Positions 27,136-64,000 of a DNA stretch of 64,000 nucleotides are shown here, in pieces. The stretch lies in sequence record MZ475895.1; one strand, written 5' to 3'. The notes beneath the pieces are model-generated. The model was not told where the DNA came from and did not search any database. It saw nothing but the letters and a program-made list of their open reading frames with translations. The translations under genes were made by a program, and so were the position numbers. The stretch's first letter is position 1, and every line of letters starts with the position of its first letter.

Positions 27136-27396
27136 ATGTATCAATATGACCGCGATGAATTGAATGACCTGCCGCTTGACGTGCTGCATGGCGAAGCTGA
27201 AAAGCGTGGCTTGCTCGCTGACCTGGAAGACGATGATGATTGTCCTGACCGTGCAGTGCTGGTGGGCATGATCATTGATGATCAGAACGAGCGCAATGCC
27301 GAAAACGAAGAGGAAGAGCAGCGCCGTCAGATGCAAGATGACGCTGACGATCACCGTCGCATGTTAGACGAACGCGACGGCTCAGACGACTGCTAA
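27136..27396 (+). CDS. acidic protein with HeH/Rho-N-like module (86 aa)
   Basis: ELNDLPLDVLHGEAEKRGL...DRAVLVGMIID; GGAGA RBS. Confidence 0.7.
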   Translation: MYQYDRDELNDLPLDVLHGEAEKRGLLADLEDDDDCPDRAVLVGMIIDDQNERNAENEEEEQRRQMQDDADDHRRMLDERDGSDDC

Positions 27397-27397
27397 C

Positions 27398-27736
27398 ATG
27401 CTATACTCTGGGCAGCAATACGATACACTCAGTCCTGACCAGTTGAATGAGTGTTTCAATCTGATTGAAAGTTGCATGGTGGCCTCTGGCTGTCGTGGCT
27501 TTCAAATAGTGTTATCACCATCTGGTCATGGCGATTGTCGTAGCGTCGTCCACATTCAGCACCCACAGTATGCAGGTCACATTGAGTTCCCCTCAGTTGA
27601 CCGTGATACTTTTCGTGTGACTCTCGTCGCAACACGCGGTTGCTATGACAGCCGCACCGTGTTCGTACCAAATTCAGATACAGCCTATTCAGTGATAGGT
27701 CTGTATCTCTCAAACTTTATAGGGGCTACAAAATGA
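27398..27736 (+). CDS. hypothetical protein (112 aa)
   Basis: Coupled ORF. Confidence 0.65.
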   Translation: MLYSGQQYDTLSPDQLNECFNLIESCMVASGCRGFQIVLSPSGHGDCRSVVHIQHPQYAGHIEFPSVDRDTFRVTLVATRGCYDSRTVFVPNSDTAYSVIGLYLSNFIGATK

Positions 27737-28077
27737 AACGCCGCATTATTCGTATCGATCAGTCAGAGTTCAACGGTGAAGCGCTTGTCTTCCCACCATC
27801 ATTCAACATCACCGGCATTGACGTTGTGGTGCTTGTGACCGTGAAGCACGAAGATTTCGGTGGCTTGAAGTTTCAAGATACCTATCGTGTGAACGAACTA
27901 CGTGTAAGCGAACATACAAATCCCCTGCGTCAGGAGATTGAGATCGTAGAGTACAGCAAACTGCCGAACGATGAAGCAATCTTCACACGACTACTCGACG
28001 TTGATTATTTCGACGACGACATTGCAGAGCGTGACCTGCGTCTGTACGATGCACCGACCACAATCGTCACTGCGTAA
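27733..28077 (+). CDS. hypothetical protein (114 aa)
   Basis: AGGGG RBS, overlap with upstream stop. Confidence 0.7.
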   Translation: MKRRIIRIDQSEFNGEALVFPPSFNITGIDVVVLVTVKHEDFGGLKFQDTYRVNELRVSEHTNPLRQEIEIVEYSKLPNDEAIFTRLLDVDYFDDDIAERDLRLYDAPTTIVTA

Positions 28078-28085
28078 TAATCTTT

Positions 28086-28112
28086 AGGGCTGCCATCTTG
28101 GTGGCCCTTTTT
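28086..28112 (+). terminator. intrinsic terminator
   Basis: AGGGCTGCC...GGTGGCCCT-TTTT. Confidence 0.75.
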
Positions 28113-28117
28113 GTTTT

Positions 28118-28125
28118 CTGTAAAC
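28118..28125 (+). promoter_or_regulatory. CTGTAAAC motif
   Basis: Directly after terminator, 35 nt before ATG 28161. Confidence 0.5.
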
Positions 28126-28160
28126 TACACGCACAATCCCAACAATGCGAGAACGCACAG

Positions 28161-28535
28161 ATGCCAAAGCGCCGCTTTTATTTGATGTTCTTTATCAGTC
28201 AGGCAGAACTCGACGCCAAGACTTTCTATCAACACAACATGCGCATCCTGACAACGATACGCCGCACACGCTGCATTTTCCTTGTGGTAAGAGAGACTGG
28301 TGAAGTCTATGTGCCAGGCAGCGCCGTGTATCAGTCTGCAATCGAAGAAGATCTAACGCAGATGGTCTTTGACGATCTGCACAAGGCCACCGAGTCTGTG
28401 AATGCGGTTGAGTCCTTTGCTCAAGCCATCGCAGTAAACAAAAACGATAAGACAGTTCGCTACTGCGGCCGCAATCCAGAAGTGAGTGTCGTCTTCTTTG
28501 ATCGCATGTTCACGAAAGTGGAGGTTCATCTATGA
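28161..28535 (+). CDS. hypothetical protein (124 aa)
   Basis: GAGAA RBS before ATG 28161. Confidence 0.65.
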   Translation: MPKRRFYLMFFISQAELDAKTFYQHNMRILTTIRRTRCIFLVVRETGEVYVPGSAVYQSAIEEDLTQMVFDDLHKATESVNAVESFAQAIAVNKNDKTVRYCGRNPEVSVVFFDRMFTKVEVHL

Positions 28536-28807
28536 GTTACGATCCACCAAAGCCAACTACGTCTCTTGGCGCTTCTCTTGCTTCGCGTTGTGCTCATTCC
28601 ACCAGAGAGAAAGCGAACAAGACGCGCAAGAAATACCCCGCGACAAAGACTGTGGTTGCTACACTGACAGCACCTATGCACGCTGCTGTGCAACGTCTCG
28701 CTAACAGTCGCGGCCTGTCTATTCAGAAGTGTCTGGTGCGTATGCTTGAAGCCGAGTTGGCGAAAGAGGGTATCACTTACGCTAAAGAACAGGACGAAGA
28801 CGAATGA
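28532..28807 (+). CDS. ribbon-helix-helix DNA-binding protein
   Basis: TVVATLTAPMHAAVQRLANSRGLSIQKCLVRML fits the RHH strand-helix-G.S-helix pattern. Confidence 0.6.
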   Translation: MSYDPPKPTTSLGASLASRCAHSTREKANKTRKKYPATKTVVATLTAPMHAAVQRLANSRGLSIQKCLVRMLEAELAKEGITYAKEQDEDE

Positions 28808-29439
28808 AACGTTTAGGTACAGTCATGGCGTTAGGTCTAAAAGACAAAGCGCCAAAGAACACTGACCTCGACATTACGCCCGTTTCGAAAGATGCAGAAT
28901 GGGGCTCTTTGAGTCCCTTTCACTTGGGGCCATGTCGAAGCGCAGATGGTATTATGTTCCACAACTTCGAAAATCTCTGGCAGTATAGCAAGGTCTACGA
29001 AGAACATTTGGAGAACACAAACCTCATCCTCGCTGGAGAGATAAACGCTGATTGGTATCAGTGGCATCTTAAAGGTGCAAGATCAAAACAGGCGCATCGC
29101 TATCCTATGGGAAAAGGCCAGAAGGCTTTATTCTCCAAATGGGGCGACTTGCGCCTTTCGTACATTCCCGCACGTAAACAGATTTATGTTCCAGGCTATG
29201 CCGAGCTACTTCTGCCTCAAAAGAAATTCAAACAACTCCTTAAGCAATACAAGGACGGCGCCAACATAATCGTCAGGGACTACGACACCTACGATCTGCT
29301 GAAAGCCTATCCCAATTCTAATCGCATGTGGCTTGATGCTCTCAGTAACCCAAACGCCAAGTTCGGTCACAGTTTCGTGATCGCCCTTGCTCTCATACTG
29401 CACGACAGACCTCTATGGTACAATCAATGGGTGATATAA
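28804..29439 (+). CDS. DUF6939-like, possibly NADAR-fold protein
   Basis: DITPVS...LSPF, FENLWQYSKVY, YIPARKQIYVP.Y, IIVRDYDT and FGHSFV motifs. Confidence 0.5.
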   Translation: MKRLGTVMALGLKDKAPKNTDLDITPVSKDAEWGSLSPFHLGPCRSADGIMFHNFENLWQYSKVYEEHLENTNLILAGEINADWYQWHLKGARSKQAHRYPMGKGQKALFSKWGDLRLSYIPARKQIYVPGYAELLLPQKKFKQLLKQYKDGANIIVRDYDTYDLLKAYPNSNRMWLDALSNPNAKFGHSFVIALALILHDRPLWYNQWVI

Positions 29440-29738
29440 TCTACGAATGGGTCCACGACCTTGAAGGTAACGAAAGTCAGAATCTGCCTATCTTGCCTCC
29501 AGACATTTATGCGTATGTGCGCGATGCCGTCACTGGCGCACGTACCCCAATCAACTTTGAAGGCCGCACCGAGTTACAGCGTCAAGACAAGAAAGTCATA
29601 GGCGTTGTCTATTGGTCTAATCGAGCTAATCTGATTTCATGGACGGGCGTCGAGCGCTTTCGTTTTACGCTGTATGTAGTACGTGCCGCACATAAGTCAA
29701 ATGAGCAACATGAGGAAGCTCAAGTCTGCACTAATTAG
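29427..29738 (+). CDS. hypothetical protein
   Basis: Fills gap; start uncertain. Confidence 0.55.
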   Translation: MGDIIYEWVHDLEGNESQNLPILPPDIYAYVRDAVTGARTPINFEGRTELQRQDKKVIGVVYWSNRANLISWTGVERFRFTLYVVRAAHKSNEQHEEAQVCTN

Positions 29739-29780
29739 GCTGAAATAGCTATCGCGCATAATACGCTCCTGTGCTATACT
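29738..29780 (+). promoter_or_regulatory. GGWCAAAAT-box promoter (copy 3)
   Basis: GGCTGAAAT 29738, TGTGC-TATACT 29775. Confidence 0.65.
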
Positions 29781-29825
29781 CATAGACGAAGCAACACATA
29801 ATCTATTCACGCTAAGGAGCGTATT

Positions 29826-30257
29826 ATGACTATCAACAAGTTTGACTTTCAAACACTGACTACTCCAGAACAATGGTCTTCCGCTGCTTGGGGTTTCTAT
29901 CGTGACTTCGCAGATCGTTTGCGTGATACTATCGGCCGCGATGATCTTTACTTCGACATTGAAGTTGATGGTGGCAGCGATAGCGACCAAGTTGCCGAAG
30001 AGATGGTCGATGATGGTGTGATTCATTTACTCATCTCGTACAAAAACGAAGATGAAGATTTCATTAACGCCAAAGGCGTCTGGCTGTTCCAAGTCACTTA
30101 CCCAACAGAAAGTGATATTGACGGTGAGTGGTCTAACCGCTTCGTGGTCGATGTGCAGACCGTTGATATGGAAATCTTAGAGCTGGTGGACTTTGATAAC
30201 GGCCACCCACGTTTGCTTGAAGATATTGCAGCGCGGGTTAATCACTGGTTAGTGTAA
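29826..30257 (+). CDS. acidic early protein (143 aa)
   Basis: AAGGAG RBS; about 32 D/E vs 10 K/R. Confidence 0.8.
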   Translation: MTINKFDFQTLTTPEQWSSAAWGFYRDFADRLRDTIGRDDLYFDIEVDGGSDSDQVAEEMVDDGVIHLLISYKNEDEDFINAKGVWLFQVTYPTESDIDGEWSNRFVVDVQTVDMEILELVDFDNGHPRLLEDIAARVNHWLV

Positions 30258-30322
30258 TTGCTTGCGGGTCTTTTACGAAGGGCCCGTCGTCAACAACACA
30301 AACCTGTTCTAAGGAGAACAAC

Positions 30323-30640
30323 ATGTCATCATTAGTTAAACTGCAATTCATCTTTCCAGAACTGACCTCAGTTACTGTAACTGTTTCTGATTCTGACATT
30401 CCTCGCTATCTCAATATTGCAGCGGGCGCAGAAGTAACATACGAAGGCGAGACGGCGCTGGAGCGTATTACTGACGTAAACCTGCTGCGCAATCTTCTCG
30501 TGGTTGATCGTAAAATCCTAGAGATGTTGCTTGAGCGTCACAACAGCGCAAACGTTTCTAGTGAAATCGCTCACGCTGTAGACCAGATCAAGTTTGTGCC
30601 TAATCGAGGCCTAAAGTTAATCGTCAATCGTTACCGCTGA
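30323..30640 (+). CDS. hypothetical protein, tandem paralogue A (105 aa)
   Basis: AAGGAG RBS; MSS...F.FIFPE.T...VTV...GETA shared with next gene. Confidence 0.8.
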   Translation: MSSLVKLQFIFPELTSVTVTVSDSDIPRYLNIAAGAEVTYEGETALERITDVNLLRNLLVVDRKILEMLLERHNSANVSSEIAHAVDQIKFVPNRGLKLIVNRYR

Positions 30641-30678
30641 GATTTGTGAAGGGCATTTGCGAGTGCTCTTTGAAAATC
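30633..30678 (+). repeat. intergenic repeat copy 1 (hairpin cassette)
   Basis: ACCGCTGAGATTTGTGAAGGGCATT-TGCG-AGTGCTCTTTGAAAATC. Confidence 0.85.
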
Positions 30679-30704
30679 CTAAACCCTAAGCTGAGGAGCT
30701 TAAC

Positions 30705-31022
30705 ATGTCATCATCTACTGAATTTCATTTCATCTTTCCAGAGTCAACCACTCTTATCGTTACTGTGGGTAACGGCATCGTCCCTGAGTATATGGGCATC
30801 CCTGCTAATCAAGAAACCCACCTGACGGGTGAGACTGCATTCAACTTTATGCAGAACTCTAACATCGTGGGCGTTATGAATCGTTTTGATCAGTCGCTTC
30901 TCAATCTGCTTATTGATCGCCATGAGCAGAACGAAGAAGAGGAGAGTGCGTTGCGTCAAGCACACATGCAGAAGCACACGAAGAACTTCGGCGTGTATCT
31001 GCTGATTAAACATCACCGCTAA
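30705..31022 (+). CDS. hypothetical protein, tandem paralogue B (105 aa)
   Basis: GAGGAG RBS; same length and motifs as 30323-30640. Confidence 0.8.
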   Translation: MSSSTEFHFIFPESTTLIVTVGNGIVPEYMGIPANQETHLTGETAFNFMQNSNIVGVMNRFDQSLLNLLIDRHEQNEEEESALRQAHMQKHTKNFGVYLLIKHHR

Positions 31023-31064
31023 GATTTGTGAAGGGCATTCGTTGCTGAGTGCTCTTTGAAAATC
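31015..31064 (+). repeat. intergenic repeat copy 2 (hairpin cassette)
   Basis: ACCGCTAAGATTTGTGAAGGGCATT-CGTTGCTG-AGTGCTCTTTGAAAATC. Confidence 0.85.
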
Positions 31065-31087
31065 AACCCTGTTCTGAGGAGAACAAT

Positions 31088-31498
31088 ATGAAACATGCAC
31101 AACCTGGCTCTGTATACACCCTGCGTGAAATGTTGACTGAACTGAGTCTGCGCGACACGCCGAATCTTGGCTTCACTCCTGTTTCTGTGCGCTATCCAGA
31201 AACGAAGGAGATTCGCCAGCAGACGGTTCAGGATTCGCATCTGACCGAAGAAGAAATGCTCGCTCTTCCTGGCTGGGCAGAAACGAAGTGGCGCTACATT
31301 CGTGAAACCCATGAGTGGATCCCTGTGTTCGTCGCTGTTGACAATGCAGAGATTGAAGCGCTGTGTGTTATCGAACCCTACACGGACCGCTACTTCCGTA
31401 ATGAGGGTATCATGCACGTTTACCCACGCGGCGTTGAGCGTGCGCAGCATAAAGCGTATGACCCAGAAACGCACGGCACACTGGTTAAAGTGGCCTAA
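31088..31498 (+). CDS. hypothetical protein (136 aa)
   Basis: GAGGAG RBS before ATG 31088. Confidence 0.8.
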   Translation: MKHAQPGSVYTLREMLTELSLRDTPNLGFTPVSVRYPETKEIRQQTVQDSHLTEEEMLALPGWAETKWRYIRETHEWIPVFVAVDNAEIEALCVIEPYTDRYFRNEGIMHVYPRGVERAQHKAYDPETHGTLVKVA

Positions 31499-31512
31499 GC
31501 ACAAACTACCTC

Positions 31513-31534
31513 AAGCGGCTTACGGGCCGCTTTT
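31513..31534 (+). terminator. intrinsic terminator (UACG loop)
   Basis: AAGCGGC-TTACGG-GCCGCTTTT. Confidence 0.8.
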
Positions 31535-31555
31535 CTTAAACATCAGGAGTCTATC

Positions 31556-32077
31556 ATGAAAACCACCGACGTAGTTCATATCGCTCATCACCTCATGACC
31601 CATCTCGCATCAGCTCGTCTCATCAGTGCATTGACTTTCATCGGTCAGGACGCTGTGCGTTTCAAAGTTGGTTCGCAGACGTTTGACGTTCGTGGTCGTC
31701 ACCCAAGCTTCATCGTTCATCAAGTTGAAGGTGGCTGCTTATGTGCAGACGCAGACTCTGCCGAGATCGAAGCGCAGTTGAACGGTGACCCAATATCTAG
31801 TATGCGTGATCAACTGCCTCATCCTGAGAACGTGCAATCTGCCATCATCGATCACGTCAACTCCATGCCAGACAAAGACGTGCAGAACTTTAGCGAGCAT
31901 CAGGGTGGCCCAGACATGGACACGATGTTTGAGCAGCGTCTGTGGTTGAAGAACTGGTTGATTAGTCGTTCAATCGTACTCGCCGACATGCTCGACATTG
32001 TTGCGTTTCTTGAAGGCACTGAGCGCCGTAACTCACTGGCTATGGCAATTGAACTCAACAAAGGGAAACGCGCATGA
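31556..32077 (+). CDS. hypothetical protein (173 aa)
   Basis: AGGAG RBS. Confidence 0.8.
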   Translation: MKTTDVVHIAHHLMTHLASARLISALTFIGQDAVRFKVGSQTFDVRGRHPSFIVHQVEGGCLCADADSAEIEAQLNGDPISSMRDQLPHPENVQSAIIDHVNSMPDKDVQNFSEHQGGPDMDTMFEQRLWLKNWLISRSIVLADMLDIVAFLEGTERRNSLAMAIELNKGKRA

Positions 32078-32574
32078 ACTTTGTACGCAGACTTAAAGCA
32101 ATCGACCAGTTGCCGTTAATCACTGGTCAGTATTACAATGCGCAAGCCATGGCAGAACAATCAGCATTCGGCTCGTGTGCGTTTCATATAACTGATCGTG
32201 TGGAGCTTGACGGCATCTCGATGTATATTCGTTTCCGCGCCAATCAGCAACGTCTGTGGATGCATCCTGTTTTGATACTCGCATCAATCGACATTGAACA
32301 TCAGGGCTGCGGTATCTTCACTGAACTTCTCGCAGAAGCCCAACGCGTATGTCGTGAGAACAAGTGGGTGCTGCAAATTGAGAACGTGCTTGAGCAACGC
32401 TTCCGCCGTTTCCTGTTTGATCGTTCATTCGAAACTATCGGCGTTGATAAAGATTGTGCGCACGGTAGCATGTTCTGGTTCTTTGATGAGAAGATCAAAG
32501 AGAGCGCAACGCAGTTCCAAGCGATGGAAGAAAACATCCGAGAACGCGCCGCAGCACAGAAGGCAACAACATGA
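32074..32574 (+). CDS. GNAT-family acetyltransferase-like protein
   Basis: LASIDIEHQGCGIFTELL (acetyl-CoA loop Q..G.G-like), LQIENV, FLFDRSF. Confidence 0.6.
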   Translation: MNFVRRLKAIDQLPLITGQYYNAQAMAEQSAFGSCAFHITDRVELDGISMYIRFRANQQRLWMHPVLILASIDIEHQGCGIFTELLAEAQRVCRENKWVLQIENVLEQRFRRFLFDRSFETIGVDKDCAHGSMFWFFDEKIKESATQFQAMEENIRERAAAQKATT

Positions 32575-33038
32575 ACATTCCATGGTACATGATGTTTGCC
32601 ATTGGCTGTGTGCCTCTTTTCTTCTGCTATGTGACTATGCCGTGGTTTCGCGCTGCTGTCAAAAGACGGTTGCTGTTTAAACCTCGTGACTACGATTCGG
32701 TGCAGGAGATCTTAGACACAGGCATACCACCTGAGATCTCTATCGAATGCTTGCAGGCTAGCTATCGCAGCAACATGCCTGCCAAGTACGCGCAGCACAT
32801 CGACTTCTATCCGCACAAGGAAGGCATCGTGTGTTGTCGCATGAAGTACGACGAGCAATTCCCAATCGCTCGCATATTTAATGGTGTACTCGTCGCAAAC
32901 ATCGGACTGCTTGCTCTGCCTAGCAAGAAGATGCCGCGCATCACCATTAACTATTCCACTTATCAAGTCACGGACTTTGATAGTGATAATGAGTACCTGC
33001 ACATTTATCTTCAACATAAGGAAGGCAAGCATGAATAA
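32571..33038 (+). CDS. hypothetical protein with N-terminal hydrophobic anchor (155 aa)
   Basis: Coupled ORF, hydrophobic first 25 aa. Confidence 0.7.
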   Translation: MNIPWYMMFAIGCVPLFFCYVTMPWFRAAVKRRLLFKPRDYDSVQEILDTGIPPEISIECLQASYRSNMPAKYAQHIDFYPHKEGIVCCRMKYDEQFPIARIFNGVLVANIGLLALPSKKMPRITINYSTYQVTDFDSDNEYLHIYLQHKEGKHE

Positions 33039-34083: not shown

Positions 34084-34090
34084 ACTAAGG

Positions 34091-34270
34091 ATGGCCTACG
34101 CACTGACTGCAATATTTCTATCTTGGCTTGAGCTGAGCATTGCAGTTCGGTATCTCGACTATACACAGATTTTTGATGCGCTGATCATTCTGGTTAGCGG
34201 TGTGAATCTGGTGATTGCTTTTATCTCGTCACTTGATGAGGTAGACCATATCTTTTCGTGGGAAGATTAA
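34091..34270 (+). CDS. small 2-TM membrane protein (59 aa)
   Basis: Hydrophobic helices. Confidence 0.55.
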   Translation: MAYALTAIFLSWLELSIAVRYLDYTQIFDALIILVSGVNLVIAFISSLDEVDHIFSWED

Positions 34271-34271
34271 A

Positions 34272-34478
34272 ATGAAAGACATTGTGCTACACACAGCCCT
34301 TTTATTGACCATGATCGTTGTTAGCTTTTTGACTCTCCACTACATTCGCTTCCTGAGTCTGGGCTACTATATGCTGATCACTATGACAGCATTCGTACTG
34401 GCAGTCTATGCGTGCAAACGTCTCGCATCTGTCGTATCTAAAAATCGTTTTAACAAAGTGAGAATCAATCGTGGCTAA
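34272..34478 (+). CDS. small 2-TM membrane protein (68 aa)
   Basis: Two hydrophobic segments, basic C-terminus. Confidence 0.6.
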   Translation: MKDIVLHTALLLTMIVVSFLTLHYIRFLSLGYYMLITMTAFVLAVYACKRLASVVSKNRFNKVRINRG

Positions 34479-35579: not shown

Positions 35580-35590
35580 GGAGAAAGATT

Positions 35591-51799: not shown

Positions 51800-53191
51800 A
51801 TGATTTTCGATCTGCGCAAAAGTTTGGCCATGGTTCGTACCGTAATCGATGACCAAGTAATCTATAACTTCTACAACATGATTGGCCGCGATATGCAACT
51901 GCCCGGTACTACTCTCAAAGAGATTATCGACGTGCAGCGTAAGGGCGAACTGTGCACCAACATCATGTGGGGTACTCAGAAGATGGAGTATCGCACACTC
52001 AGATTCGATGAGCGTGGTGATCTTCTCTTAGACGTGACCGTTGGTCCGCATTGCTACGCACGGCTCTCTTACGATCAGATTGAACACTATGGGCGCAAAG
52101 AGTTTAAGGCTATTAACTGCATCGAGATCGATAGCTACCTCGCCCGTGACATTAGAGCGCATCTTCGCGCAGTGGGCCAAACTGAGCCTAAGCTCGAATG
52201 GTATGACAACGTGTCGGATGATGAACTGAAGGACGCTCTACTTTCAGTTGGTCACATGGGACCTCTGGCTTATGAAGGTAAATCTCGTAACCAGTTAGAG
52301 GACATGTTTGAGAAATTCCAGCGTAAGCACGATGCAGAATACAAGTACACGCACGCGCATATTGGCTTAGACCCAGACGAAAAGCTGCCTGCTGATTTGT
52401 ATGAAGATGAGGCACGCTCAATCACTCGTCGTTCTTTTGCTCCTCAGAAGACTGTCGATATGATGATCACTGAGATCTCAAACGTGATGCGCATGTTCGA
52501 TATCTGGGATTCAGCGCCGACATCCGAGACGCATGAGTGGTCAATGCAGGAGGCGTACATGGCCTTCTATAACAGCTTAGTGATTGATAGCGATGGCAGC
52601 CGTCTGCGTGAACTGAAAGATAATCCACAGTTCGCTATCAACTTCATCTACGGCATGGCGGCAGACCTGAATTGGATTCACATCAACGAGATGACCGAAG
52701 ACTATCGTGGCTCGGTTGTGAATCGCATCCTGCAGGAGATTGCTGTTGAGATCAGCACCTCTGATGATTACTGCACGACGGAGCACGGCATCGCTCTTAT
52801 TAAGAAAGAAGAAGAGACAGAAGAAGAGGAGGAGGATGCTTCTGAGCCCGTCTCCATCGAAAAGAAAAAGAAGAAAGGCTTCCCGGATATTCGCTCAGTA
52901 GAAGAGGTGAACTATGACGCACTGCATATCATCGAGATTACATACAAACTGCCCAAGCAGCCTAAGCTGCGCACTAAGCTAGACGTACTGCAATCTCGTG
53001 AGTGCTATCTTGAGCACTTCTTCGGTTGTTTGAAAGAAAATGATTGGCATAGATTAGACAATATCACTAATCTTGACCTGCGCCGTATTGTTGGTGCTGT
53101 TACTAAATCTAATGGTGGTAGATTCAGCCACAACGCCCTGTTAAACATAATTAAACGTGCAGCTAAGAAACTGGCTGCCACTGAGTTCTAA
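51800..53191 (+). CDS. hypothetical protein (463 aa)
   Basis: AGGAG RBS; internal EEETEEEEED/KKKKK block. Confidence 0.85.
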   Translation: MIFDLRKSLAMVRTVIDDQVIYNFYNMIGRDMQLPGTTLKEIIDVQRKGELCTNIMWGTQKMEYRTLRFDERGDLLLDVTVGPHCYARLSYDQIEHYGRKEFKAINCIEIDSYLARDIRAHLRAVGQTEPKLEWYDNVSDDELKDALLSVGHMGPLAYEGKSRNQLEDMFEKFQRKHDAEYKYTHAHIGLDPDEKLPADLYEDEARSITRRSFAPQKTVDMMITEISNVMRMFDIWDSAPTSETHEWSMQEAYMAFYNSLVIDSDGSRLRELKDNPQFAINFIYGMAADLNWIHINEMTEDYRGSVVNRILQEIAVEISTSDDYCTTEHGIALIKKEEETEEEEEDASEPVSIEKKKKKGFPDIRSVEEVNYDALHIIEITYKLPKQPKLRTKLDVLQSRECYLEHFFGCLKENDWHRLDNITNLDLRRIVGAVTKSNGGRFSHNALLNIIKRAAKKLAATEF

Positions 53192-54513: not shown

Positions 54514-54696
54514 GTGAAGACCACCAACGACCTGATTAAAGAATTAAAGCAACATCGTGTTATCATCATTGAAGAACACGACAAGCATATTCTGCCTGAC
54601 CTGACATTCGCCCTGAGTTGCTTATGCATCGATCATACTAAGCGTGTGGTCGAAACAAAGCGTAGTGCTCAGGCAACCAAAATCAAACTCGCATGA
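54514..54696 (+). CDS. hypothetical protein (60 aa)
   Basis: GTG start, fills gap. Confidence 0.5.
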   Translation: MKTTNDLIKELKQHRVIIIEEHDKHILPDLTFALSCLCIDHTKRVVETKRSAQATKIKLA

Positions 54697-54703
54697 GGTT
54701 ACT

Positions 54704-55141
54704 ATGAAATTTGATCAAGCACCAACGAAAGCACAACTCGTGCTGCTGGCCCTCGCTCTCGAATCCGTTCTCCTCTCTATGGAGAAAACGTTTATCAACC
54801 GTAATCTGCTGGAGCAGTTACTTGCGAAGTACGGCATCTCGTTTAACGATCTGAAAGAGTTGCGAGAGTACGGCGAAAAGCATTCCGCCATCGGTACCAG
54901 CGTTGCTCAAGTTATGGAGATAGCTGCCTTGCATGTGGCTCATCTGAAAACAGAACCTGTGCCTGAATACAGTCAAGACGACCTTGATCTAATTCGCGTA
55001 GAATACGAGCCAATCGATACGTCTGTCCTACGCCAGGGCGCTGTGAATGATGGGGTTATCACAGTGCAGCAAGCAGCCACTTTTGAGCGCGATCAGATAC
55101 TGACTGCTATTCTTGAGTACCGACTGCGCTCAGAAGCATAA
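54704..55141 (+). CDS. hypothetical protein (145 aa)
   Basis: GAGGT RBS before ATG 54704. Confidence 0.75.
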   Translation: MKFDQAPTKAQLVLLALALESVLLSMEKTFINRNLLEQLLAKYGISFNDLKELREYGEKHSAIGTSVAQVMEIAALHVAHLKTEPVPEYSQDDLDLIRVEYEPIDTSVLRQGAVNDGVITVQQAATFERDQILTAILEYRLRSEA

Positions 55142-55194: not shown

Positions 55195-55279
55195 GTAGCG
55201 TAGACGTGAGGTATGCGCTATAAATTGAATGACGCGTTTTTGCTTGACTGTAAGGTAGCGGTATCTTACAGTCCTTTTT
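55195..55279 (+). ncRNA. candidate small RNA / leader attenuator (about 85 nt)
   Basis: Promoter, 5' hairpin, then GACTGTAAG-loop-CTTACAGTC-CTTTTT; no ORF. Confidence 0.4.
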
Positions 55280-55397: not shown

Positions 55398-56219
55398 ATG
55401 CCAGAAGCACGCAAACCTCGCCCAGCTGATCGTTTCGCTAAAGCCCGTGCAGAGAAAAACTCACCGGAGCGTCAAGATGCGGCAGCCCAGCGCACGTATA
55501 AAGACACTCCGCCTAAATCTGTTCAGGTGAAACTTGATGCTGTGGCAGCTTCTAAGAAGAAAGTTTCTCGCGGCCCCAAGGCCTCTCGTCCACGTCAGTC
55601 GCCTGCTGTTGACGCAGCACCAAAGCCTCGCATTCGTGATGAGGAACGTGTGTACAATCTCGTACACATGATTCTCTCTGCGTGGAAAGCCGATGCAGAA
55701 AACGCGGCAGCAAGTGTGGGAATCATTAAAGTGTCTCGTCGTAAGATTGAGGGTGCGTTACGCGATCTCAAGAATACGCGCTTCACTAAAATCCCAGGCT
55801 TAATCAATGACGTGCTTGTCTACAATGAACTGGTAGCTGAGTTCGGACAGTGGGTGTACGTCGAGCACGACAGTCCTGATTGGATTTTTGTGCGCCTGCC
55901 TGAAAACAGCACGCCTGTGATTCGCGCTGACATTAGCTATGCCAAGACGGGTGAAACTTCCACGTCTGTTTCGACTTCTAGTGAAGTTCTGCTGAAAGAT
56001 CTTAGCGAAGACGAAGAAGATGAGATCCCCGAGAATGTCGAGTACGACGATGCGGACGAGACTGACGAAGACGAAGAGGAGCCGTATGACTACAGCGCTT
56101 GGTCTCTGCGTGACCTGCAGGAGTATGCGAAGCGCTATGACTTCTTGCAGCCCGACACTGAGGGGTTTGATGATCGCGAGAAGTTGATAGCAGCCATCGA
56201 GCTGGGGGAACAGCACTAA
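55398..56219 (+). CDS. basic-N / acidic-C protein with terminal HeH-like module (273 aa)
   Basis: AAGGA RBS; R/K/P-rich N-terminus; EDEEDE...DYSAWSLRDLQEYAKRYDF...DREKLIAAIE. Confidence 0.8.
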   Translation: MPEARKPRPADRFAKARAEKNSPERQDAAAQRTYKDTPPKSVQVKLDAVAASKKKVSRGPKASRPRQSPAVDAAPKPRIRDEERVYNLVHMILSAWKADAENAAASVGIIKVSRRKIEGALRDLKNTRFTKIPGLINDVLVYNELVAEFGQWVYVEHDSPDWIFVRLPENSTPVIRADISYAKTGETSTSVSTSSEVLLKDLSEDEEDEIPENVEYDDADETDEDEEEPYDYSAWSLRDLQEYAKRYDFLQPDTEGFDDREKLIAAIELGEQH

Positions 56220-56229
56220 GCACAAATAT

Positions 56230-56273: not shown

Positions 56274-56279
56274 ATAGAT

Positions 56280-56334
56280 CGAATGCCTTGTAGTTTTTTG
56301 ACTGTGAGTTACTTTCCGGCTCACAGTCCTTTTT
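56280..56334 (+). ncRNA. candidate stand-alone small RNA (about 55 nt)
   Basis: Promoter copy 10 followed by GACTGTGAG-loop-CTCACAGTC-CTTTTT; the next gene has its own promoter. Confidence 0.45.
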
Positions 56335-56402
56335 AAAGTGCTCTCCCAAGAACGCTTTAAAAAGCACAGACTGCCTGCGCTTTTGATAGACAGCATAAAT
56401 CT

Positions 56403-56445
56403 GGACAAAATCATGGTTGTATCAGAATGCTGCCTGTCATACACT
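56403..56445 (+). promoter_or_regulatory. GGWCAAAAT-box promoter (copy 11)
   Basis: GGACAAAAT 56403, TTGTAT-17-TACACT 56440. Confidence 0.72.
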
Positions 56446-56506
56446 TTAATGAGTCGAGCAATAGTGCTCGCAACAAACTAAATCCCAATACTGAGGAGTA
56501 TTACAC

Positions 56507-58096
56507 ATGGCACGTTTCGAAACTAACACTAACCTGGTTGGCAAAACTATCGTCCTGCTGAACGGCACCAAAGCGAAGATTGAAGACGCTATCGTTTCTG
56601 GCTACAAAGTGAAAGGCCAGACCAAGCGCATCGCAACCCGTGACGTTATCAAAGAGGGTGCGCACTTTAAAGAAATCGAGCGCACGCCGCTGAGCCAGCT
56701 GGAAGATACTGGTGAAGGTTATGTGAAGTTGAAAGAAGCCAAAGCTGCTTCTAAGAAAGCGCCTGCGAAAGACGCTAAAGCTACTGGCAAAAAAGCTGCG
56801 GCAAAAGACAAGCCTGCTAAGACCAGCAAAAAAGCTGCCGCTAAAGATAAGCCAGCGAAAGAGCAAGAGCCGAAAGTTCGCCGTAAGTCTGCGAAAGAGC
56901 AGGGCAACGATTATCAGGAACTCGCGCAGGCTATCATCAAAGGCGGTCGCCGTGCAGCGCCAGTTGAAATTGACAGCGTAGACGAAGCGCTGACCGATGC
57001 AATCGCTAAGCGTCTGACCGCTGTTGTCGAATCGTCTGAGATTGCGAAACTCGCCGCTGATAACAAAACGCCGATCGCTAACGCACTGACCGTAACTTAC
57101 GGTGCTGAGTTTGCGACTGATGCAAACGTTGTGCAGATTACGCTGAACCTGCAATACGCTAAGCCGACTGCTGTTGAGTCTGCCGCTCCTACTCTGGAGA
57201 ATGCCGAAGCAATCGCAATGCGTGCTGCTAAAATGGCCGCGCCGAAAGTGAGCGCTAAACTCAAGAAGGCAGTGCGTGAAGCATTCGATATTGAAACAGA
57301 CCTTGAGCTGGGTACTGTGATTATGTCAGGCGATGATCAATTCGCTTACTACGGCGAAAGCGCGAAGCACGCTGGCAAAGCGCTGCTGTATGTTGTCGAA
57401 ACTGACAAGTTCAAATCTGTCTTGGCCTCTACTCTGACCGACTACGAACTGCCTGCTGATGAAGAAGCTGAGGCAGAAGAAGAGGAGGAAGAAGAAGAGG
57501 AGGAAGAAGAACCCGCTGATGACTTCGACGACGAAGAGGAAGAAGATGCGGACGATGCAGATGATGCCGACGATGCTGATGGCGACGACGACGAATTCCA
57601 GTACGTTGCTGTAGGCGATGAACACTTTGCTCTGGTCAACAAAAAGATCACAGCCAAGTATCACGATGCACTGGCTGAGCAATTCGGCGTTAGCACCGAA
57701 GCGCTGGTCCCAGGCTTAGTGTTGACCAACGGCGAGATCACTTTCGCTTATCTGGGCAACGATAGCAAAGGCGGCCTGCTCGTTATCGACCTCGACGACG
57801 ATGCGGACGAAGACGACAACGTTCTGGTCTACCCGAAAGCCGACGTTAAATCTCTGACCGACTTCTCTCCTGTGCTGGGTGATGCAGATGAAGAAGACGC
57901 AGACGATGCAGAAGAGACCGACGAAGAAGACGAAGATCAGGACGACGACTTCGAATTTGACGATGCGCCGACTGCCGACCTCGAAGATCTGTCCGACGAT
58001 GAGCTGCGTGACCGCGCTGTTGAGATGGGCCTGACCACTGTACGCAAAGCTGACAAAATGAACGCCAAGCAACTGCGTGCGCTGCTGTCTGAATAA
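56507..58096 (+). CDS. modular protein: shared N-domain, histone-H1-like AK repeats, acidic tracts, C-terminal HeH-like module (529 aa)
   Basis: GAGGAG RBS; KKAAAKDKPAK x2; poly-E/D; DLEDLSDDELRDRAVEMGL. Confidence 0.85.
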   Translation: MARFETNTNLVGKTIVLLNGTKAKIEDAIVSGYKVKGQTKRIATRDVIKEGAHFKEIERTPLSQLEDTGEGYVKLKEAKAASKKAPAKDAKATGKKAAAKDKPAKTSKKAAAKDKPAKEQEPKVRRKSAKEQGNDYQELAQAIIKGGRRAAPVEIDSVDEALTDAIAKRLTAVVESSEIAKLAADNKTPIANALTVTYGAEFATDANVVQITLNLQYAKPTAVESAAPTLENAEAIAMRAAKMAAPKVSAKLKKAVREAFDIETDLELGTVIMSGDDQFAYYGESAKHAGKALLYVVETDKFKSVLASTLTDYELPADEEAEAEEEEEEEEEEEEPADDFDDEEEEDADDADDADDADGDDDEFQYVAVGDEHFALVNKKITAKYHDALAEQFGVSTEALVPGLVLTNGEITFAYLGNDSKGGLLVIDLDDDADEDDNVLVYPKADVKSLTDFSPVLGDADEEDADDAEETDEEDEDQDDDFEFDDAPTADLEDLSDDELRDRAVEMGLTTVRKADKMNAKQLRALLSE

Positions 58097-58171
58097 GTAA
58101 CCTGTAGTTCTGAATACATGCGGCTCGAAAGGGCCGCACACTGACAACAAAGTTGATTGAGGAATCACATT

Positions 58172-59458
58172 ATGTCAAACGCAAACAAAATTCTGCTTAA
58201 CGCTCGTGTACGCCGCTTAGACGGTACTGTTACTTACATCAACAAAGTGAATGCTAACGGTTATAGCACCGATGCGAAAGGCCCGCAGATTCCTGTCAAG
58301 CGCATTGTGTTTGCAGGCAAGATGCTGAAAGAGATTGAACAGCCCTTTGAGAAAGGCGAGCACGTCATTGTGCAGGGCGTTGCAGTGAAGCTGAACAAGC
58401 GCCAGCAACGTGAGCTTGCTGATGGCACTCTCGATGAGAAAGCGCTGCGTCCTGAGTTCGGTAAGCTGGCAGTGATTGACCCTGATACAGGCAAAGCAAC
58501 TGACGGCAAGAAAGTGAAGCCAACCAAGTCTGATGCTAAAGCCCCGAAAGCTGGCGCGAAAGCAAGTCTGAAAGCAACGCGTGAGCACAACAAAGAGCCG
58601 AAGCGCAGTCGCAAACAGCACAAAGCTGAAACGAACGATCTCAAAGACAGTCTGGACATTATCGACGAACGCAAATCACCGAAAGCGTCTCTGATTGAAC
58701 GTCTGGATGCAGCAATCGCCGAAGCGAAAACGAAAGCACGCCGTAAGCTGTTAGCCGAAACGTTCGACATGGACTGGGCTGATATTAAAAAGCATGGCGG
58801 TGCAGGTATCGTTAAGCAGCACGGCCGCAAGAACGCCCAGAAGTTTATTGATCGTCAGACAGTGCAGGTCGATAGCACAACGTTCATCAAACAAATGCCA
58901 GCGCCGCTCAAGCGTCTTATTCAGGACACTGAGTTGCGTCTCAATCAAAAGCAGATTGAGCAAGTGCTTGGTGCGCTGGGGCTTGATACGCAATTCTACG
59001 CAGTCGCCGTGCAGGAGCTGCTGGGCAAACTCAAACTGTCCATAGGCGGTCGCGTGATCGAAGGCGAAGTTGTTCGAAAGGAGAACACGCCGAAGCCAAA
59101 AAGGTTCGTACACGCTGAGGCGCTATATGCAGACAAGAAAGAAGCGAAACGCCGCGTAAGCAAAATGAAATATGCGCTGCTGATTCCGCCTACGAAAGGT
59201 CTGCCTGCGTTACGCATCCATCAGGCAGAGGCAAAGCAGTCACTCGCCGTTCTGCTGCACCTGAAGCCTGGGAACATCAAGCGTGGTCTGCTTGCGTATG
59301 ACAACAAAGGCCGTGAGTATATGTATGTCGCTTGCGATATGACGGGCCCTGTGTTCATCGATAAAGATAGCAACGAACTGGCGTTCACGTATGCCAATCT
59401 GATCGATAACTTCAAACTCAAAGCGCAGCCTGTGTCTGAACTGGACGTGGCCGTATGA
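58172..59458 (+). CDS. basic paralogue of 56507 protein (428 aa)
   Basis: GAGGA RBS; N-terminal L.GT...I...GY...I...G...KEIE shared. Confidence 0.8.
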   Translation: MSNANKILLNARVRRLDGTVTYINKVNANGYSTDAKGPQIPVKRIVFAGKMLKEIEQPFEKGEHVIVQGVAVKLNKRQQRELADGTLDEKALRPEFGKLAVIDPDTGKATDGKKVKPTKSDAKAPKAGAKASLKATREHNKEPKRSRKQHKAETNDLKDSLDIIDERKSPKASLIERLDAAIAEAKTKARRKLLAETFDMDWADIKKHGGAGIVKQHGRKNAQKFIDRQTVQVDSTTFIKQMPAPLKRLIQDTELRLNQKQIEQVLGALGLDTQFYAVAVQELLGKLKLSIGGRVIEGEVVRKENTPKPKRFVHAEALYADKKEAKRRVSKMKYALLIPPTKGLPALRIHQAEAKQSLAVLLHLKPGNIKRGLLAYDNKGREYMYVACDMTGPVFIDKDSNELAFTYANLIDNFKLKAQPVSELDVAV

Positions 59459-59841
59459 GAACTGAAATCATCGTAGCGGGAGTTCTCTCTCAACTTTACA
59501 CGCGGCTGATTACGGCCGCTATAATGAAAGCGCATGTGTATTACTCAGACCTTGCGCCGGTGGTATTCGGTGTGCAGCTTACCAAAGTCGGTAAGTCGCA
59601 GTATCAAGCGCTGTGGGATTTAGTAGCGCTGACGATGCAGATGGACCACGCACACGGCCGACCGCCTGTTGCTGCTCTGTATGTGTCTCGCGCTAATGCA
59701 TCAAAACGACCGCCGCAAGCATTCTTCGCTGAATACGAGCGGCTAACTGGTAAGCGACTCAATGACGACGACTGGGAAGAGTTAGTCGATGAAGTATGGG
59801 CAGCTTACTCTCCACCAGAAATCTGTCAGGAGCCGACATGA
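59455..59841 (+). CDS. hypothetical protein (128 aa)
   Basis: ATGA overlap; YYSDLA...GRPPVAAL..S...P..AFF pattern. Confidence 0.7.
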   Translation: MRTEIIVAGVLSQLYTRLITAAIMKAHVYYSDLAPVVFGVQLTKVGKSQYQALWDLVALTMQMDHAHGRPPVAALYVSRANASKRPPQAFFAEYERLTGKRLNDDDWEELVDEVWAAYSPPEICQEPT

Positions 59842-60296
59842 AGAAGTTGAAAGCCGTAAAGGTTAAAATTAGCCGCGGTGGTTATAAGCCTTCTTCTAAG
59901 GAAGAGGCAAAGAAGCTGGTGGCAGAGTTTCTGCTCGGCACCATCGGCATTAGCCCAACGCAAGTCAGTCAACAACTGCTGTTGAATATCACGAACTACA
60001 ACTATTTGACCTCTGTTGCGTATTCTGGACGTTCTACAGATTACAGCCAGGCGGCAGCGCACAAAACTGTAAAAGAACTAAATGAATTTTGTCGAAAGCA
60101 TAAAATTCAACTGGGCTTGCTAATTATGCCCCACACGTCGGCGTCTGAATATGATGGTGACGTAATTGTTGCAATCCCGTGGGAGCATGTTAAGAACAAT
60201 CCGCAAATCCAGTCTGCCGTTAATTCTCTGTTTGAATCGGTTGAAGCAGACGGCTACCCACAGTATGTGACTGATGCTAAAACAGTAGAGGGATAA
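59838..60296 (+). CDS. hypothetical protein (152 aa)
   Basis: AGGAG RBS before ATG 59838. Confidence 0.75.
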   Translation: MKKLKAVKVKISRGGYKPSSKEEAKKLVAEFLLGTIGISPTQVSQQLLLNITNYNYLTSVAYSGRSTDYSQAAAHKTVKELNEFCRKHKIQLGLLIMPHTSASEYDGDVIVAIPWEHVKNNPQIQSAVNSLFESVEADGYPQYVTDAKTVEG

Positions 60297-60297
60297 G

Positions 60298-61578
60298 ATG
60301 TTCTACGACTATGTATTCAACTTCGACGAGCGCCAGACGCTACTGTCGTTAGCGGAATCCAAGTATCTTCTTAAACGGGACATTCCCGAGTATCTTAAAA
60401 AGTCCAAACACGCAATTGAGATTCGTCACACTGTGACCAATCGTGGACGCGAGCGCCGCTCAGGAACAATAACAACTCCTATCGTGCCGCGTATTCACAC
60501 CCGTGATGTTATGCGCTTGCTTGATGATATTCGTGACAACGCGACTTACAGCTCCTGCCAAAGTCTCGCTGAACTGTTTGAATTGGGCTTGGGCGTTCCG
60601 CGCCAGAAAGATATTGCTACTTACCTTCATGCTTATTCGCGTGAGCACGATAAGAAAGGTATCGGTATCAAGTATATCCGCAAGCTGGTGGTTGATTATC
60701 ATCGTAAGCACCGTCGTAGTATGGCGGGCAGTCGCTGGTTAATGCCTGCTGCTTACACGGCCAATCTGCTGAACATGCAGAACTTCATTCATCTGAAAGA
60801 AGACGGCTACAAGGGTAAAGTCAAAACGCCAGACGGCATCCCTGTAGTCTTGATTTACCAGAGCACTGAATACGCGACTGGCGAGTTTACTCTGTGTGAC
60901 GCATTCATGATTAGTCCGATGGGATATCCAATGCCGTTCGCACAGATTGCGCTGCGTCCCGAGTTCAAGGCTGTGCCTAAAACGTTTTGCTCCCAAGCTC
61001 TGCGTGGCAAAGGCATGTACTCAATGGTTCTCGGTATGATTTACTGGGAGAAAGGTGATTCAGTCGAATTGACACGCGAAGTCATGGAGATTGATGACAA
61101 CCAGTATCTCACGTTGCTCGATGATGAACGTTATGCTGACCGCCGCTCTGATGAATATTCAGCGATGCTGGTCAAGCGTGAAGAGTTCCGTCGCAATCGT
61201 GACAAGTGGCAGTCAGTGATTGATAAGTACGGCCAGACAGTTCGAACCCTCAAGCCTGAGATTAGCGCTCGTCTTGATCGTGCTCGTCAGTTCTTCTACG
61301 ACCGCTCCGAGTTCCTGAAAGAGTTCGAGTCTCAGGAGAAGCGTGAGAACACCCGCGCATCAAAACGTTTTGCTGTAGCGTCTGCGATGTTTGCTGCGAT
61401 TGACTGTGGGACAATTGCTGATCGTCAGACCTACCTTGCAGTGAGCACAAAGATTGATAAAGTGCATGACATTCTCGGTAAGTGGGGATTCAACACTGTA
61501 AAATCTGTTAATGCTAGTTTGAAGAAGTCTCTTTTAACCTATGACGAATCAGGCGTATCTCGCGTCTGGTCACTATAA
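60298..61578 (+). CDS. hypothetical protein with one Sel1-like repeat (426 aa)
   Basis: CQSLAELFELGLGVPRQKDIA resembles the Sel1 consensus LG..Y..G.GV..D...A. Confidence 0.7.
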   Translation: MFYDYVFNFDERQTLLSLAESKYLLKRDIPEYLKKSKHAIEIRHTVTNRGRERRSGTITTPIVPRIHTRDVMRLLDDIRDNATYSSCQSLAELFELGLGVPRQKDIATYLHAYSREHDKKGIGIKYIRKLVVDYHRKHRRSMAGSRWLMPAAYTANLLNMQNFIHLKEDGYKGKVKTPDGIPVVLIYQSTEYATGEFTLCDAFMISPMGYPMPFAQIALRPEFKAVPKTFCSQALRGKGMYSMVLGMIYWEKGDSVELTREVMEIDDNQYLTLLDDERYADRRSDEYSAMLVKREEFRRNRDKWQSVIDKYGQTVRTLKPEISARLDRARQFFYDRSEFLKEFESQEKRENTRASKRFAVASAMFAAIDCGTIADRQTYLAVSTKIDKVHDILGKWGFNTVKSVNASLKKSLLTYDESGVSRVWSL

Positions 61579-61599
61579 CCCTTATCTGAGGAGATAAAC

Positions 61600-64000
61600 A
61601 TGTCCGAGAACAATCAAAGCGGAGCTACTCGCTTCGGCACAGAAGTGCAGGCCGGCATCGCAGAAGCGCAACGCCGTGCTAACTCTGCTGAGAGTGGCAA
61701 GCTGAACAAATGCACGATCATCGTGCTGACTTCGATTGACGCCAACCAGCGTTACTCTTATCTGTCCGCAGACGAACAACTGCGCGAAGAACTGGTGCGT
61801 GGTAAAGTAATCAATCGTCTGCCTGATCTGTTAGAGCGTGCTGGTGGTAATACCGCTGCTGACAATAACAGCGCGTTCCACATCCTGCATCCAAACAACG
61901 GTGTGCCTACCTCGATCGATGCTCGCATCAAAGTGGGCGAAGGCAATGCGGTCATTCTGTCATATACTGTAAACAAAGCAGTGACAGAGATGCACGGTAG
62001 CTTATCGCTTGCTCTGTTTGCATCTGGCGCCGAAGACTTAAATGATCTGGCCGCTGATTTCGGTATTCACGCAATTGCGATTGTTGAAGAATCGAAAGCC
62101 GCTGAGTTCATCAAAGGACTTGAAGCTCAGGTGGAAGCGTTGAATATTGTAAATCTCACTAGCATTGATGATTCTAACGATTCGTTAGACCTGCCAGTGA
62201 TTGACTTCGCTGCATTAGCGGGCAATCCTACAACAGTGCTTACGGGCGCTGTGCGTACCTTCATCATGCAATCAATCAGCGGCGAAGTCTTCGCTGCAAT
62301 CCCTAATAACGGAGAACTGAACGTGAAAAACGATAACGTGGCTCAGCCTGCTGACCTGGAAGAAGACTTCGACAACAATGATGAGATTGTTGATCAGAAC
62401 GGCGGCGAAGGCGAAGTTACTGGCGAAGAGCTGCTGGGCTACAAAGCAGAAAATCTTTCGCTTGACCAAATGCGTAGTGCGCTTGAAGCGATCAACTACG
62501 ACCTGTCTGAAATGACGGAAGAAGCAATCCGTGAAGCGTTCGAAACTGAACAGAACCTTTACCTGGGTGGCGGCGATGATGAATCTTCCGAAGAAGAGGA
62601 AGATGAAGACGCCACTGATGTTGACAGCGACGAAGAAGAAGAGGAAGAAGACGAGGAGTTCGATGCTCCTGCGTATCTGGCTCAAGCGCTCGCTGCTGAA
62701 AACTTTAGCCGTAGCGATCTGAAACTGCTGGTCAAGTCGCAAGACCTGAAAGTGATGAAGAACGACACTCCTGAAACTCTGGTGCAGAAGCTGCTGGACC
62801 TGGTGCAGGACGCATCGTCTGATGAAGTGTTCGAACTGATCACTGTGTTCGTTGAACTGCTGGACGAGCACGGCGTTGAGTGTGACGCGCTGCGTGCTAC
62901 CATCGCTGAGGATGAAAGCGATGAAGACGAAGAAGAGGACGGCGAAGACGAAGACGCCGATGAAGATGGCGACGACGAAGAAGAGGAAGATGAAGAGGAG
63001 TCTGATGAAGACGAATCTGAAACCGAATCTGACGACGAACCTGCAACGCTGTTTTCTGCCTCTGACGTTACTGATCCTCTCGACTACTTCCAGTTCGAAG
63101 GTGGTGACCTGACTCACGAACAACGCGCCGCTGCCGTACAGGCGATGGGTTCAAGCACTGTTGGTCTGAACATCGTTCAGGTCATGAAAGCGTTCAATCA
63201 AATCCGTTCACAGTCTAACGCGATTGACATTGCCGCTGATGAAGCCGACTCTGCGCTGTACGACATGCTGACTGCGCTGCCGTATGCAACGCTGCTGAGC
63301 TTCGCTCAAGAGATTGAGCTGGACGTTGACGGCGAAGAGTCTGCCGAAGATCTCGTCACTTTGCTGATGGACGAATCTACTGCCGACAGCGATACGCTGA
63401 AAGCGCTGGCGTATGTGTTTGAAACCTACGGCGGCCTGGGTGTTGAAGCAGATGATATCCTGCTGATGGACTGGCATGAAGCGCTGGCGCTGGTTATTCC
63501 TGTGTATGCATCGTCAGACGAAGTTGAGTCCGATGCAGAAGAAGACGAAGACGAAGACGTTATCGCTGATGAAGATTCGTCTAACGCTAACCTGAAGTTC
63601 CTGAAATCTGTTGACGTCAACAACCCTGTCGGCCCGATGCTCGAAGTTGATATGGACCGCACTCTGGTTATCAACTACACCTTCACTGACGGTAACACTT
63701 ACCGCGATGTGCAAGATGAGCTGGCTGATATCGGTGGCGTTAACTACCGCTTCCCGTTCAATCTGGGCAAAGCTGGTAAAGCAAACAAGAGCAGCGCGCC
63801 TGGTAGCCTGATTGCTCCTGCTGAACATCTGATCGCAATGTTAGACCGCGCTGGTACTACTCGCTTCTTAGCTGACCCGAACACCTTCGATGTTGGTGTG
63901 TGGGCAGAATCTCTGGAGCGTATGCTGAACGCAGAAATCGCTAACAATCTGTATGCTGGTCGCATTGAAGACGGCGCTGACCCGCAGCAAGCTGGCATCG
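61600..64000 (+). CDS. very large acidic multi-module protein (at least 800 aa, runs off window; missing from ORF track)
   Basis: GAGGAG RBS, ATG 61600, frame read manually with no stop to 63999; poly-D/E tracts alternate with HeH-like helical modules. Confidence 0.88.
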   Translation, partial: MSENNQSGATRFGTEVQAGIAEAQRRANSAESGKLNKCTIIVLTSIDANQRYSYLSADEQLREELVRGKVINRLPDLLERAGGNTAADNNSAFHILHPNNGVPTSIDARIKVGEGNAVILSYTVNKAVTEMHGSLSLALFASGAEDLNDLAADFGIHAIAIVEESKAAEFIKGLEAQVEALNIVNLTSIDDSNDSLDLPVIDFAALAGNPTTVLTGAVRTFIMQSISGEVFAAIPNNGELNVKNDNVAQPADLEEDFDNNDEIVDQNGGEGEVTGEELLGYKAENLSLDQMRSALEAINYDLSEMTEEAIREAFETEQNLYLGGGDDESSEEEEDEDATDVDSDEEEEEEDEEFDAPAYLAQALAAENFSRSDLKLLVKSQDLKVMKNDTPETLVQKLLDLVQDASSDEVFELITVFVELLDEHGVECDALRATIAEDESDEDEEEDGEDEDADEDGDDEEEEDEEESDEDESETESDDEPATLFSASDVTDPLDYFQFEGGDLTHEQRAAAVQAMGSSTVGLNIVQVMKAFNQIRSQSNAIDIAADEADSALYDMLTALPYATLLSFAQEIELDVDGEESAEDLVTLLMDESTADSDTLKALAYVFETYGGLGVEADDILLMDWHEALALVIPVYASSDEVESDAEEDEDEDVIADEDSSNANLKFLKSVDVNNPVGPMLEVDMDRTLVINYTFTDGNTYRDVQDELADIGGVNYRFPFNLGKAGKANKSSAPGSLIAPAEHLIAMLDRAGTTRFLADPNTFDVGVWAESLERMLNAEIANNLYAGRIEDGADPQQAGI

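Follow-up and report, generated by a model that had tools for sequence, protein, structure and literature searches.

In a 64,000-nucleotide stretch (hereafter the window) of the genome of pEa_SNUABM_14 (MZ475895, 264 kb), an Alexandravirus-like jumbo phage whose host is the fire-blight bacterium Erwinia amylovora, we found a family of conserved modules of about 40 residues that adjoin tracts of aspartate and glutamate (D/E) and are predicted to fold as helix/extended-loop/helix (HeH) units (as defined by ortholog profiles, hhalign and AlphaFold2, AF2). The family is clade-specific and of an already-known small-module kind, and its conservation, predicted fold, tether architecture and synteny are established by the results given below. 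We consider, with a probability of roughly 0.55, that the modules spread by duplication and swapping through a conserved gene cluster of the Alexandra-, Yoloswag-, Salmond- and Sasquatch-viruses and of a Yersinia phage, and that they are tethered docking or anchoring units; every binding partner, as well as the biological role, is one that we infer. The module observation made in an initial annotation of the window is partly confirmed: it is real and richer than first stated (i.e. extra copies, internal repeats and module swapping), and all eleven strings that had been quoted for it are present in the genes to which they were assigned (string check).

The relatives used for comparison were Alexandravirus, Yoloswagvirus, Salmondvirus (Dickeya JA29), Sasquatchvirus Y3, Dickeya AD1 and the Yersinia phage fHe-Yen9-02, which have been placed together with PaBG and Lu11 (PMC7412058). 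Genome-wide scans were performed on a stand-in record (pEa_SNUABM_7, hereafter G001; 93% word-identical), in which the window corresponds to positions 186041-251392. The annotation of the matched 7 kb in pEa_SNUABM_14 gives every gene as 'hypothetical protein', PHROGs returned matches to unknown-function families only, the ESM Atlas was without usable matches, and literature searches found no paper on these proteins.

A module family in two sequence groups

The module-bearing proteins (named by their first position in the window or, beyond it, by gene number) are laid out as follows:

27136-27396, plus strand: acidic protein of 86 aa; group-2 module (about 27157-27276, its loop very acidic), then an acidic tail
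55398-56219, plus strand: 273-aa protein; basic N-terminal disordered part, conserved core, acidic tract (56001-56087), Ish1-like group-2 module (56088-56210)
56507-58096, plus strand: 529-aa protein; beta-barrel, Lys/Ala/Pro-rich basic tract (56738-56908), alpha/beta domain and barrel, acidic tract (57458-57589), third domain, acidic tract (57869-57970), C-terminal group-1 module (57965-58093)
61600-64000, plus strand: very acidic protein of 1003 aa, of which the first 800 are in the window; N-domain, four modules, start of the C-domain
62431-62556 (residues 283-323) and 63085-63210 (residues 497-536), plus strand: type A modules (group 1) of 61600
62665-62919 and 63241-63519, plus strand: type B modules (group 2) of 61600
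62683-62805 (residues 366-401) and 63262-63375 (residues 558-590), plus strand: two-helix cores of these type B modules
62572-62655, 62920-63057 and 63523-63579, plus strand: acidic linkers of 61600
L001:27281-28075, about 2.3 kb past the window's end: gene 00330 of pEa_SNUABM_14, 264 aa, two 56507-type modules

Profile-profile comparison (hhalign on ortholog sub-alignments, with reversed-target controls) resolved these modules into two groups: group 1 comprises the C-terminus of 56507, both copies in 00330, versions ii and iii of the 55398 family and the two type A copies of 61600, and group 2 the Ish1-like C-terminus of 55398, 27136 and the two type B copies of 61600. Within group 1, the 56507 type aligned with version ii of the 55398 family (P 4e-7), version ii with version iii (P 3e-8), and residues 278-322 of 61600 with its residues 494-536 (P 1e-7). 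The corresponding values within group 2 were P 2e-4 for residues 362-402 of 61600 with residues 554-592, P 6e-4 for 27136 with the latter segment and P 1e-3 for the Ish1-like C-terminus of 55398 with 27136; the reversed-target controls, in the comparisons in which they were run, all gave P of at least 0.017. Moreover, the modules of distant 56507 relatives form a bridge between the 56507 type (P 5e-12) and residues 278-322 of 61600 (P 3e-6, or 7e-6 once the sole sequence picked via that profile was dropped). The initial annotation had taken its segments for one family; ortholog profiles do link the copies, but as two sequence groups that are weakly connected to each other (hhalign P 0.006-0.03 only), yet by alignments that are full-length and in register. 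Merging the profiles of groups 1 and 2 was tried and did not raise their similarity.

Used by themselves, the segments that had been quoted lent each other no support: a hidden Markov model (HMM) of six of them found no further match in the genome (next E 1.5) and, in leave-one-out trials, ranked the omitted segment 25th or worse. The 'weaker versions' proposed at 25897 and 43235 were matched by no profile, and both were rejected as family members. Conversely, copies had been overlooked at residues 497-536 of 61600 and, beyond the window, in gene 00330 (two) and gene 00333 (a candidate). An iterated HMM of the 56507 module recovered 14 copies from five phages (E 1e-12 to 1e-20), namely those of 56507 itself and of its orthologues in four relatives, those of the 00330-like proteins (two copies per complete protein, one each in two cut loci) and one in Alexandra gp317. 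The same module HMM matched 00330 with an independent E-value (iE) of 1.3e-4, and this protein, which consists of a basic N-terminus, a module, an acidic tract, a second module, an acidic tail and little else, is the clearest minimal family member. The group-2 profile (C2 HMM) matched 27136 with an iE of 1.2e-4, the 27136 segment being one of the profile's seeds; the ortholog of 27136 in phage Y3 keeps both helices. A related-locus search with 56507 returned zero relatives, and an exhaustive search of 1.84 billion proteins with the 56507-family profile returned only 36 representative clusters at E <= 1e-3; distant metagenomic relatives have kept acidic tracts together with one or two modules, and no annotated neighbours were found around the one such relative that was inspected.

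In gp317 (L017:3531-5147) the 56507-type module lies at residues 413-444, and the window counterpart (51800-53191) is shorter and matched by no module profile, which looks, from the sequences, like a gain or loss of the module between close relatives.

Exchange of modules is seen in the 55398 family. Behind the conserved core and acidic tract, the 57 homologues end either in nothing further or in one of three module versions (of the sequences examined, 12 are Ish1-like, 55398 included, 14 are 56507-like and 8 have a third version), and different versions are swapped at this one C-terminal position. The C-terminal module of 56507 is conserved in the orthologues of Alexandra, Yoloswag, JA29 and the Yersinia phage, behind an acidic tract that changes in both length and sequence, and orthologue comparison of 61600 likewise revealed a central region of four conserved helical modules between variable acidic linkers. 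Outside the close clade, the best BFVD fold relatives of full-length 61600 (L015:8992-12000), PaBG included, are of 356-420 aa only, so that an older two-domain protein may have acquired the central module/acidic array by insertion.

Predicted fold, tethers and loop charge

The AF2 models, built with the family alignments, placed the modules at a predicted local distance difference test score (pLDDT) of 85-93 and left the acidic tracts unstructured (pLDDT below 40). Every modelled copy is composed of a 10-residue helix, a loop of 9-13 residues and a second helix (residues 497-506 and 520-528 in 56507; residues 288-297/307-323, 371-380/391-401, 506-515/525-559 and 562-571/582-590 in 61600), with the type B modules running on into further helices. 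This is the layout of a SAP domain (two helices of ~10 residues and an extended loop within roughly 35-40 residues). The best PDB structural matches of residues 548-641 of 61600 were the SAP domains of FAN1, Siz1 and PIAS1, and the structural matches overall were to Rho-N and SAP domains and to a single chain of TFIID; in an all-against-PDB alignment, residues 352-443 of 61600 matched death-fold bundles at a similar Z, which we treated as generic.

At the level of Pfam models, sub-threshold likeness to Ish1, SAP and LEM stands, and the Rho_N and HeH models, also named in the initial annotation, proved of no use genome-wide. Ish1 was the sole repeated match in the 55398 family: on the isolated 55398 module it scored 21.2 bits (E 3.7e-4, model positions 1-33 of 37) against a cut-off of 26.6 bits, and it recurred, again below threshold, in three of the ten Ish1-like relatives scanned (14.7-16.4 bits). 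SAP (PF02037) reached 19.0 bits on the isolated 56507 module (cut-off 23.9, E 0.0011, model positions 1-21 of 37), matched one of the 13 56507-family modules and gave no match against whole proteins, and LEM (PF03020) was found below threshold in 3 of 13 56507-type modules (E 0.03-0.05; 0.03 for the C-terminus of 56507). Nothing was detected by Pfam in the other four isolated segments, whole-protein Pfam scans of two of the protein families gave unrelated weak matches only, and PDB sequence searches with module and family profiles were without SAP or Rho matches. Taken together, the models, the SAP structural matches and the sub-threshold Pfam scores support the earlier reading of the segments as HeH/SAP/Rho-N-like, a fold assignment that we consider plausible.

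It could be argued that the modules have no common function, and that group 2 and a part of group 1 are no more than commonplace amphipathic helix pairs, which recur by chance or convergence in acidic proteins rich in helices, with only the C-terminus of 56507, 00330 and the internal repeats of 61600 being related. We hold this to be unlikely, as the alignments between subtypes differ from those of the controls in being full-length and in register, as the Ish1-like and SAP-like versions interchange at the same site of orthologous proteins, and as loops of 9-13 residues favour HeH over tight hairpins.

The module is constant and its tethers are not: in the 56507 family the former is fixed at 39-41 aa, and the flanking acidic tracts measure 21-53, 34-62 and 24-148 aa. 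Only seven open reading frames (ORFs) of the 265-kb genome have dense D/E tracts (at least 12 of 15 residues), and three of these (56507, 61600 and 00330) carry modules; the tracts of 55398 and 27136 are milder. The remaining four dense-tract ORFs, in none of which a module was detected, are 43235, a zinc-ribbon protein resembling single-stranded-DNA-binding proteins (SSB) and two on the minus strand. The zinc-ribbon protein (window 13253-14515, plus strand; 421 aa) has a Cys-x2-Cys motif and a tail in which pure D/E runs alternate with lysine/serine runs, and may be an SSB-like protein whose block-charged tail is unusual. Outside the window, a minus-strand ORF at G001 108888-111005 (706 aa, no module detected) has a D-L-D type repeat as the basis of its four long D/E-rich tracts. 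With regard to the loops, a conserved basic one is restricted to the 56507-type modules (mean 3.8 lysine/arginine residues, net +2.6), those of 61600 having 0-1.6 such residues and a net acidic or neutral charge.

Gene cluster, proposed role and alternatives

Alexandra, Yoloswag, JA29 and the Yersinia phage, the last of which is unclassified, share the order 55398, 56507, a gene of ~430 aa, two small genes, a gene of ~426 aa and the 61600 gene (~1000 aa), and the cluster lies within a long plus-strand block with topoisomerase II genes downstream. Its further features are:

54644-55141, plus strand: 165-aa ORF; candidate group-1 module at the C-terminus (54995-55123), not significant with the group-1 profile (C1 HMM, iE 0.016-0.064)
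58157-59458, plus strand: 433-aa, strongly basic protein (lysine plus arginine 19%) directly downstream of 56507, with neither acidic tract nor module
L001:29365-30135: gene 00333; candidate 56507-type module near residues 165-198 (iE about 0.6)
L001:30276-32300: GyrB-like gene 00334, directly downstream of the module cluster
L001:33035-34696: GyrA-like gene 00338, likewise

Gene 00333 and the ORF at 54644-55141 are weak candidates (iE 0.016-0.8). In the long gaps upstream of 55398 and 56507 lie two GC-poor hairpins that are nearly identical and have a T run behind them (55246-55273 and 56300-56328, plus strand), and each of these genes may therefore have its own terminator or regulatory hairpin. 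The 58157 protein shares with 56507 an N-terminal barrel and a basic disordered tract. Among the BFVD fold matches of the 56507 model are a Yoloswag protein (359 aa) and a JA13 protein (308 aa), whose lengths are those of the gene adjoining the 56507 orthologue in Yoloswag and JA29; because length and position agree, 58157 is likely a paralogue of 56507. At the level of fold, the models of 56507 and 61600 have relatives, all uncharacterised, in PaBG and among the BFVD entries (two of these), and Foldseek comparison of the 56507 model with the PDB gave no match below E 0.25.

We propose that the modules would act as small folded docking or anchoring units, situated at the ends of disordered D/E tracts or between them, and that the tracts would be flexible, length-tolerant tethers which also supply negative charge. 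The 56507/00330 type, with a basic loop as in DNA-binding SAP domains, probably contacts nucleic acid or a nucleic-acid-bound partner, if its sequence is a guide. The mostly acidic copies of 61600, 27136 and 55398 more likely bind protein partners, and the acidity of the 61600 and 27136 copies argues against DNA binding for those copies. Combined with the basic disordered tracts of the cluster, the modules would make for multivalent proteins with patterned charge, whose targets would be DNA-protein assemblies of the phage or the host.

Several observations weigh against this proposal. Most copies are net acidic, unlike DNA-binding SAP domains; homology between groups 1 and 2 is not demonstrable at the P values given above; and the modules were modelled inside longer chains rather than as isolated units. 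No Pfam model of the HeH clan attains its cut-off: Rho_N (PF07498) had no match at E <= 10 in G001 (12 of 14 control genomes were matched) and none for the isolated segments, and HeH (PF12949) gave a single 11-position match (E 0.097) elsewhere in the genome. None of the RNA sequencing runs searched covers the stretch.

The same architecture could be read as that of virion-internal, scaffold or ejected proteins, whose terminal helix-loop-helix docks to capsid or portal (the C-terminal docking of the P22 scaffolding protein serving as the model, by analogy) and whose acidic tracts are packaged polyanions or are cut off by the prohead protease. Large myophages commonly package acidic, proteolytically processed proteins, a background that suits such a role. 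A tethered terminal module does look like a targeting signal, and the very acidic 706-aa ORF shows that a second protein of this character exists elsewhere in the genome. Processing has been described for the virion proteins of PaBG (PMC7412058), but none of 14 of these could be linked to the present families, whose profiles had as their sole match in PaBG an acidic tract in an AAA-ATPase-like gene. As the cluster moreover sits in a same-strand block adjoining topoisomerase II and a phosphohydrolase, away from recognised structural genes, we regard a role in the particle as improbable.

We are equally doubtful of a takeover function, an idea suggested in outline by the initial annotation, in which the D/E tracts would act as DNA mimics that sequester nucleoid proteins or RNA polymerase of the host, with the HeH modules targeting the nucleoid or Rho/RNA polymerase, or the set as a whole building a replication compartment or condensate. 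The three small beta-barrels of 56507 have weak Tudor/KOW/CarD-like matches, but these fall inside the tool's stated noise range; the annotated stretch showed neither a chimallin-type shell nor any related context, and promoter scans were uninformative on timing. Still more speculative, and in our opinion rather improbable, is that the basic 58157, the polyampholyte 56507, the hyper-acidic 61600, 00330 and their neighbours next to topoisomerase II make up a phage chromatin-like or condensate-forming system, in which SAP-like modules would anchor multivalent, oppositely charged disordered proteins to DNA and so organise a replication or packaging zone in a lineage without the known protein-shell nucleus.

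Returning to the tethered docking units that we favour, no function is assigned to some 70% of the genes of these jumbo phages, and a recurring conserved building block is now defined across several orphan proteins, for three of which domain maps were obtained. If the modules are DNA or partner anchors, the cluster is a testable candidate for DNA organisation, or for the disarming of host DNA-binding proteins, in jumbo phages that do not form a nucleus; if they are not, it is still an example of small-module shuffling among neighbouring phage genes.

Comparison with known systems

The nearest known counterparts include the SAP domains (PF02037; e.g. PIAS1, Siz1, FAN1, SLX4 and Hcc-1), from which the phage modules differ by a sub-cut-off score that spans the first helix only, by the mostly net acidic character of their copies and by their position on long D/E tethers in phage proteins. 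The N-terminal HeH subdomain of Rho (PF07498; PDB 1a62, residues 1-40) is followed by an OB-fold and an ATPase that the phage modules are without, and they show no link to termination. The likeness to the Ish1/Man1-Src1 HeH and LEM domains of nuclear-envelope proteins (PF10281, PF12949, PF03020) is found at the C-terminus of 55398 and of three in ten relatives and extends over nearly the whole Ish1 model (E 4e-4 to 0.04); however, the phage proteins are of bacterial-virus origin, have no membrane anchor, and all their matches lie below the gathering cut-offs. Among phages, a 'Rho termination factor-like N-terminal domain-containing' protein of Gordonia phage GMA6 (BFVD A0A0K0NL92) likewise contains a module of the HeH type and is a weak fold match to 61600 (E 0.089), a likeness at the level of fold only; the copies of the Erwinia clade differ in being multi-copy, acidic-tethered and confined to one syntenic cluster. 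Finally, the eukaryotic chromatin proteins DEK and HMGB1 join a small DNA-binding module to acidic tracts, and their combination of a small helical module, long D/E stretches and basic tails may be regarded, by analogy only, as a parallel in overall design to the phage proteins described here.

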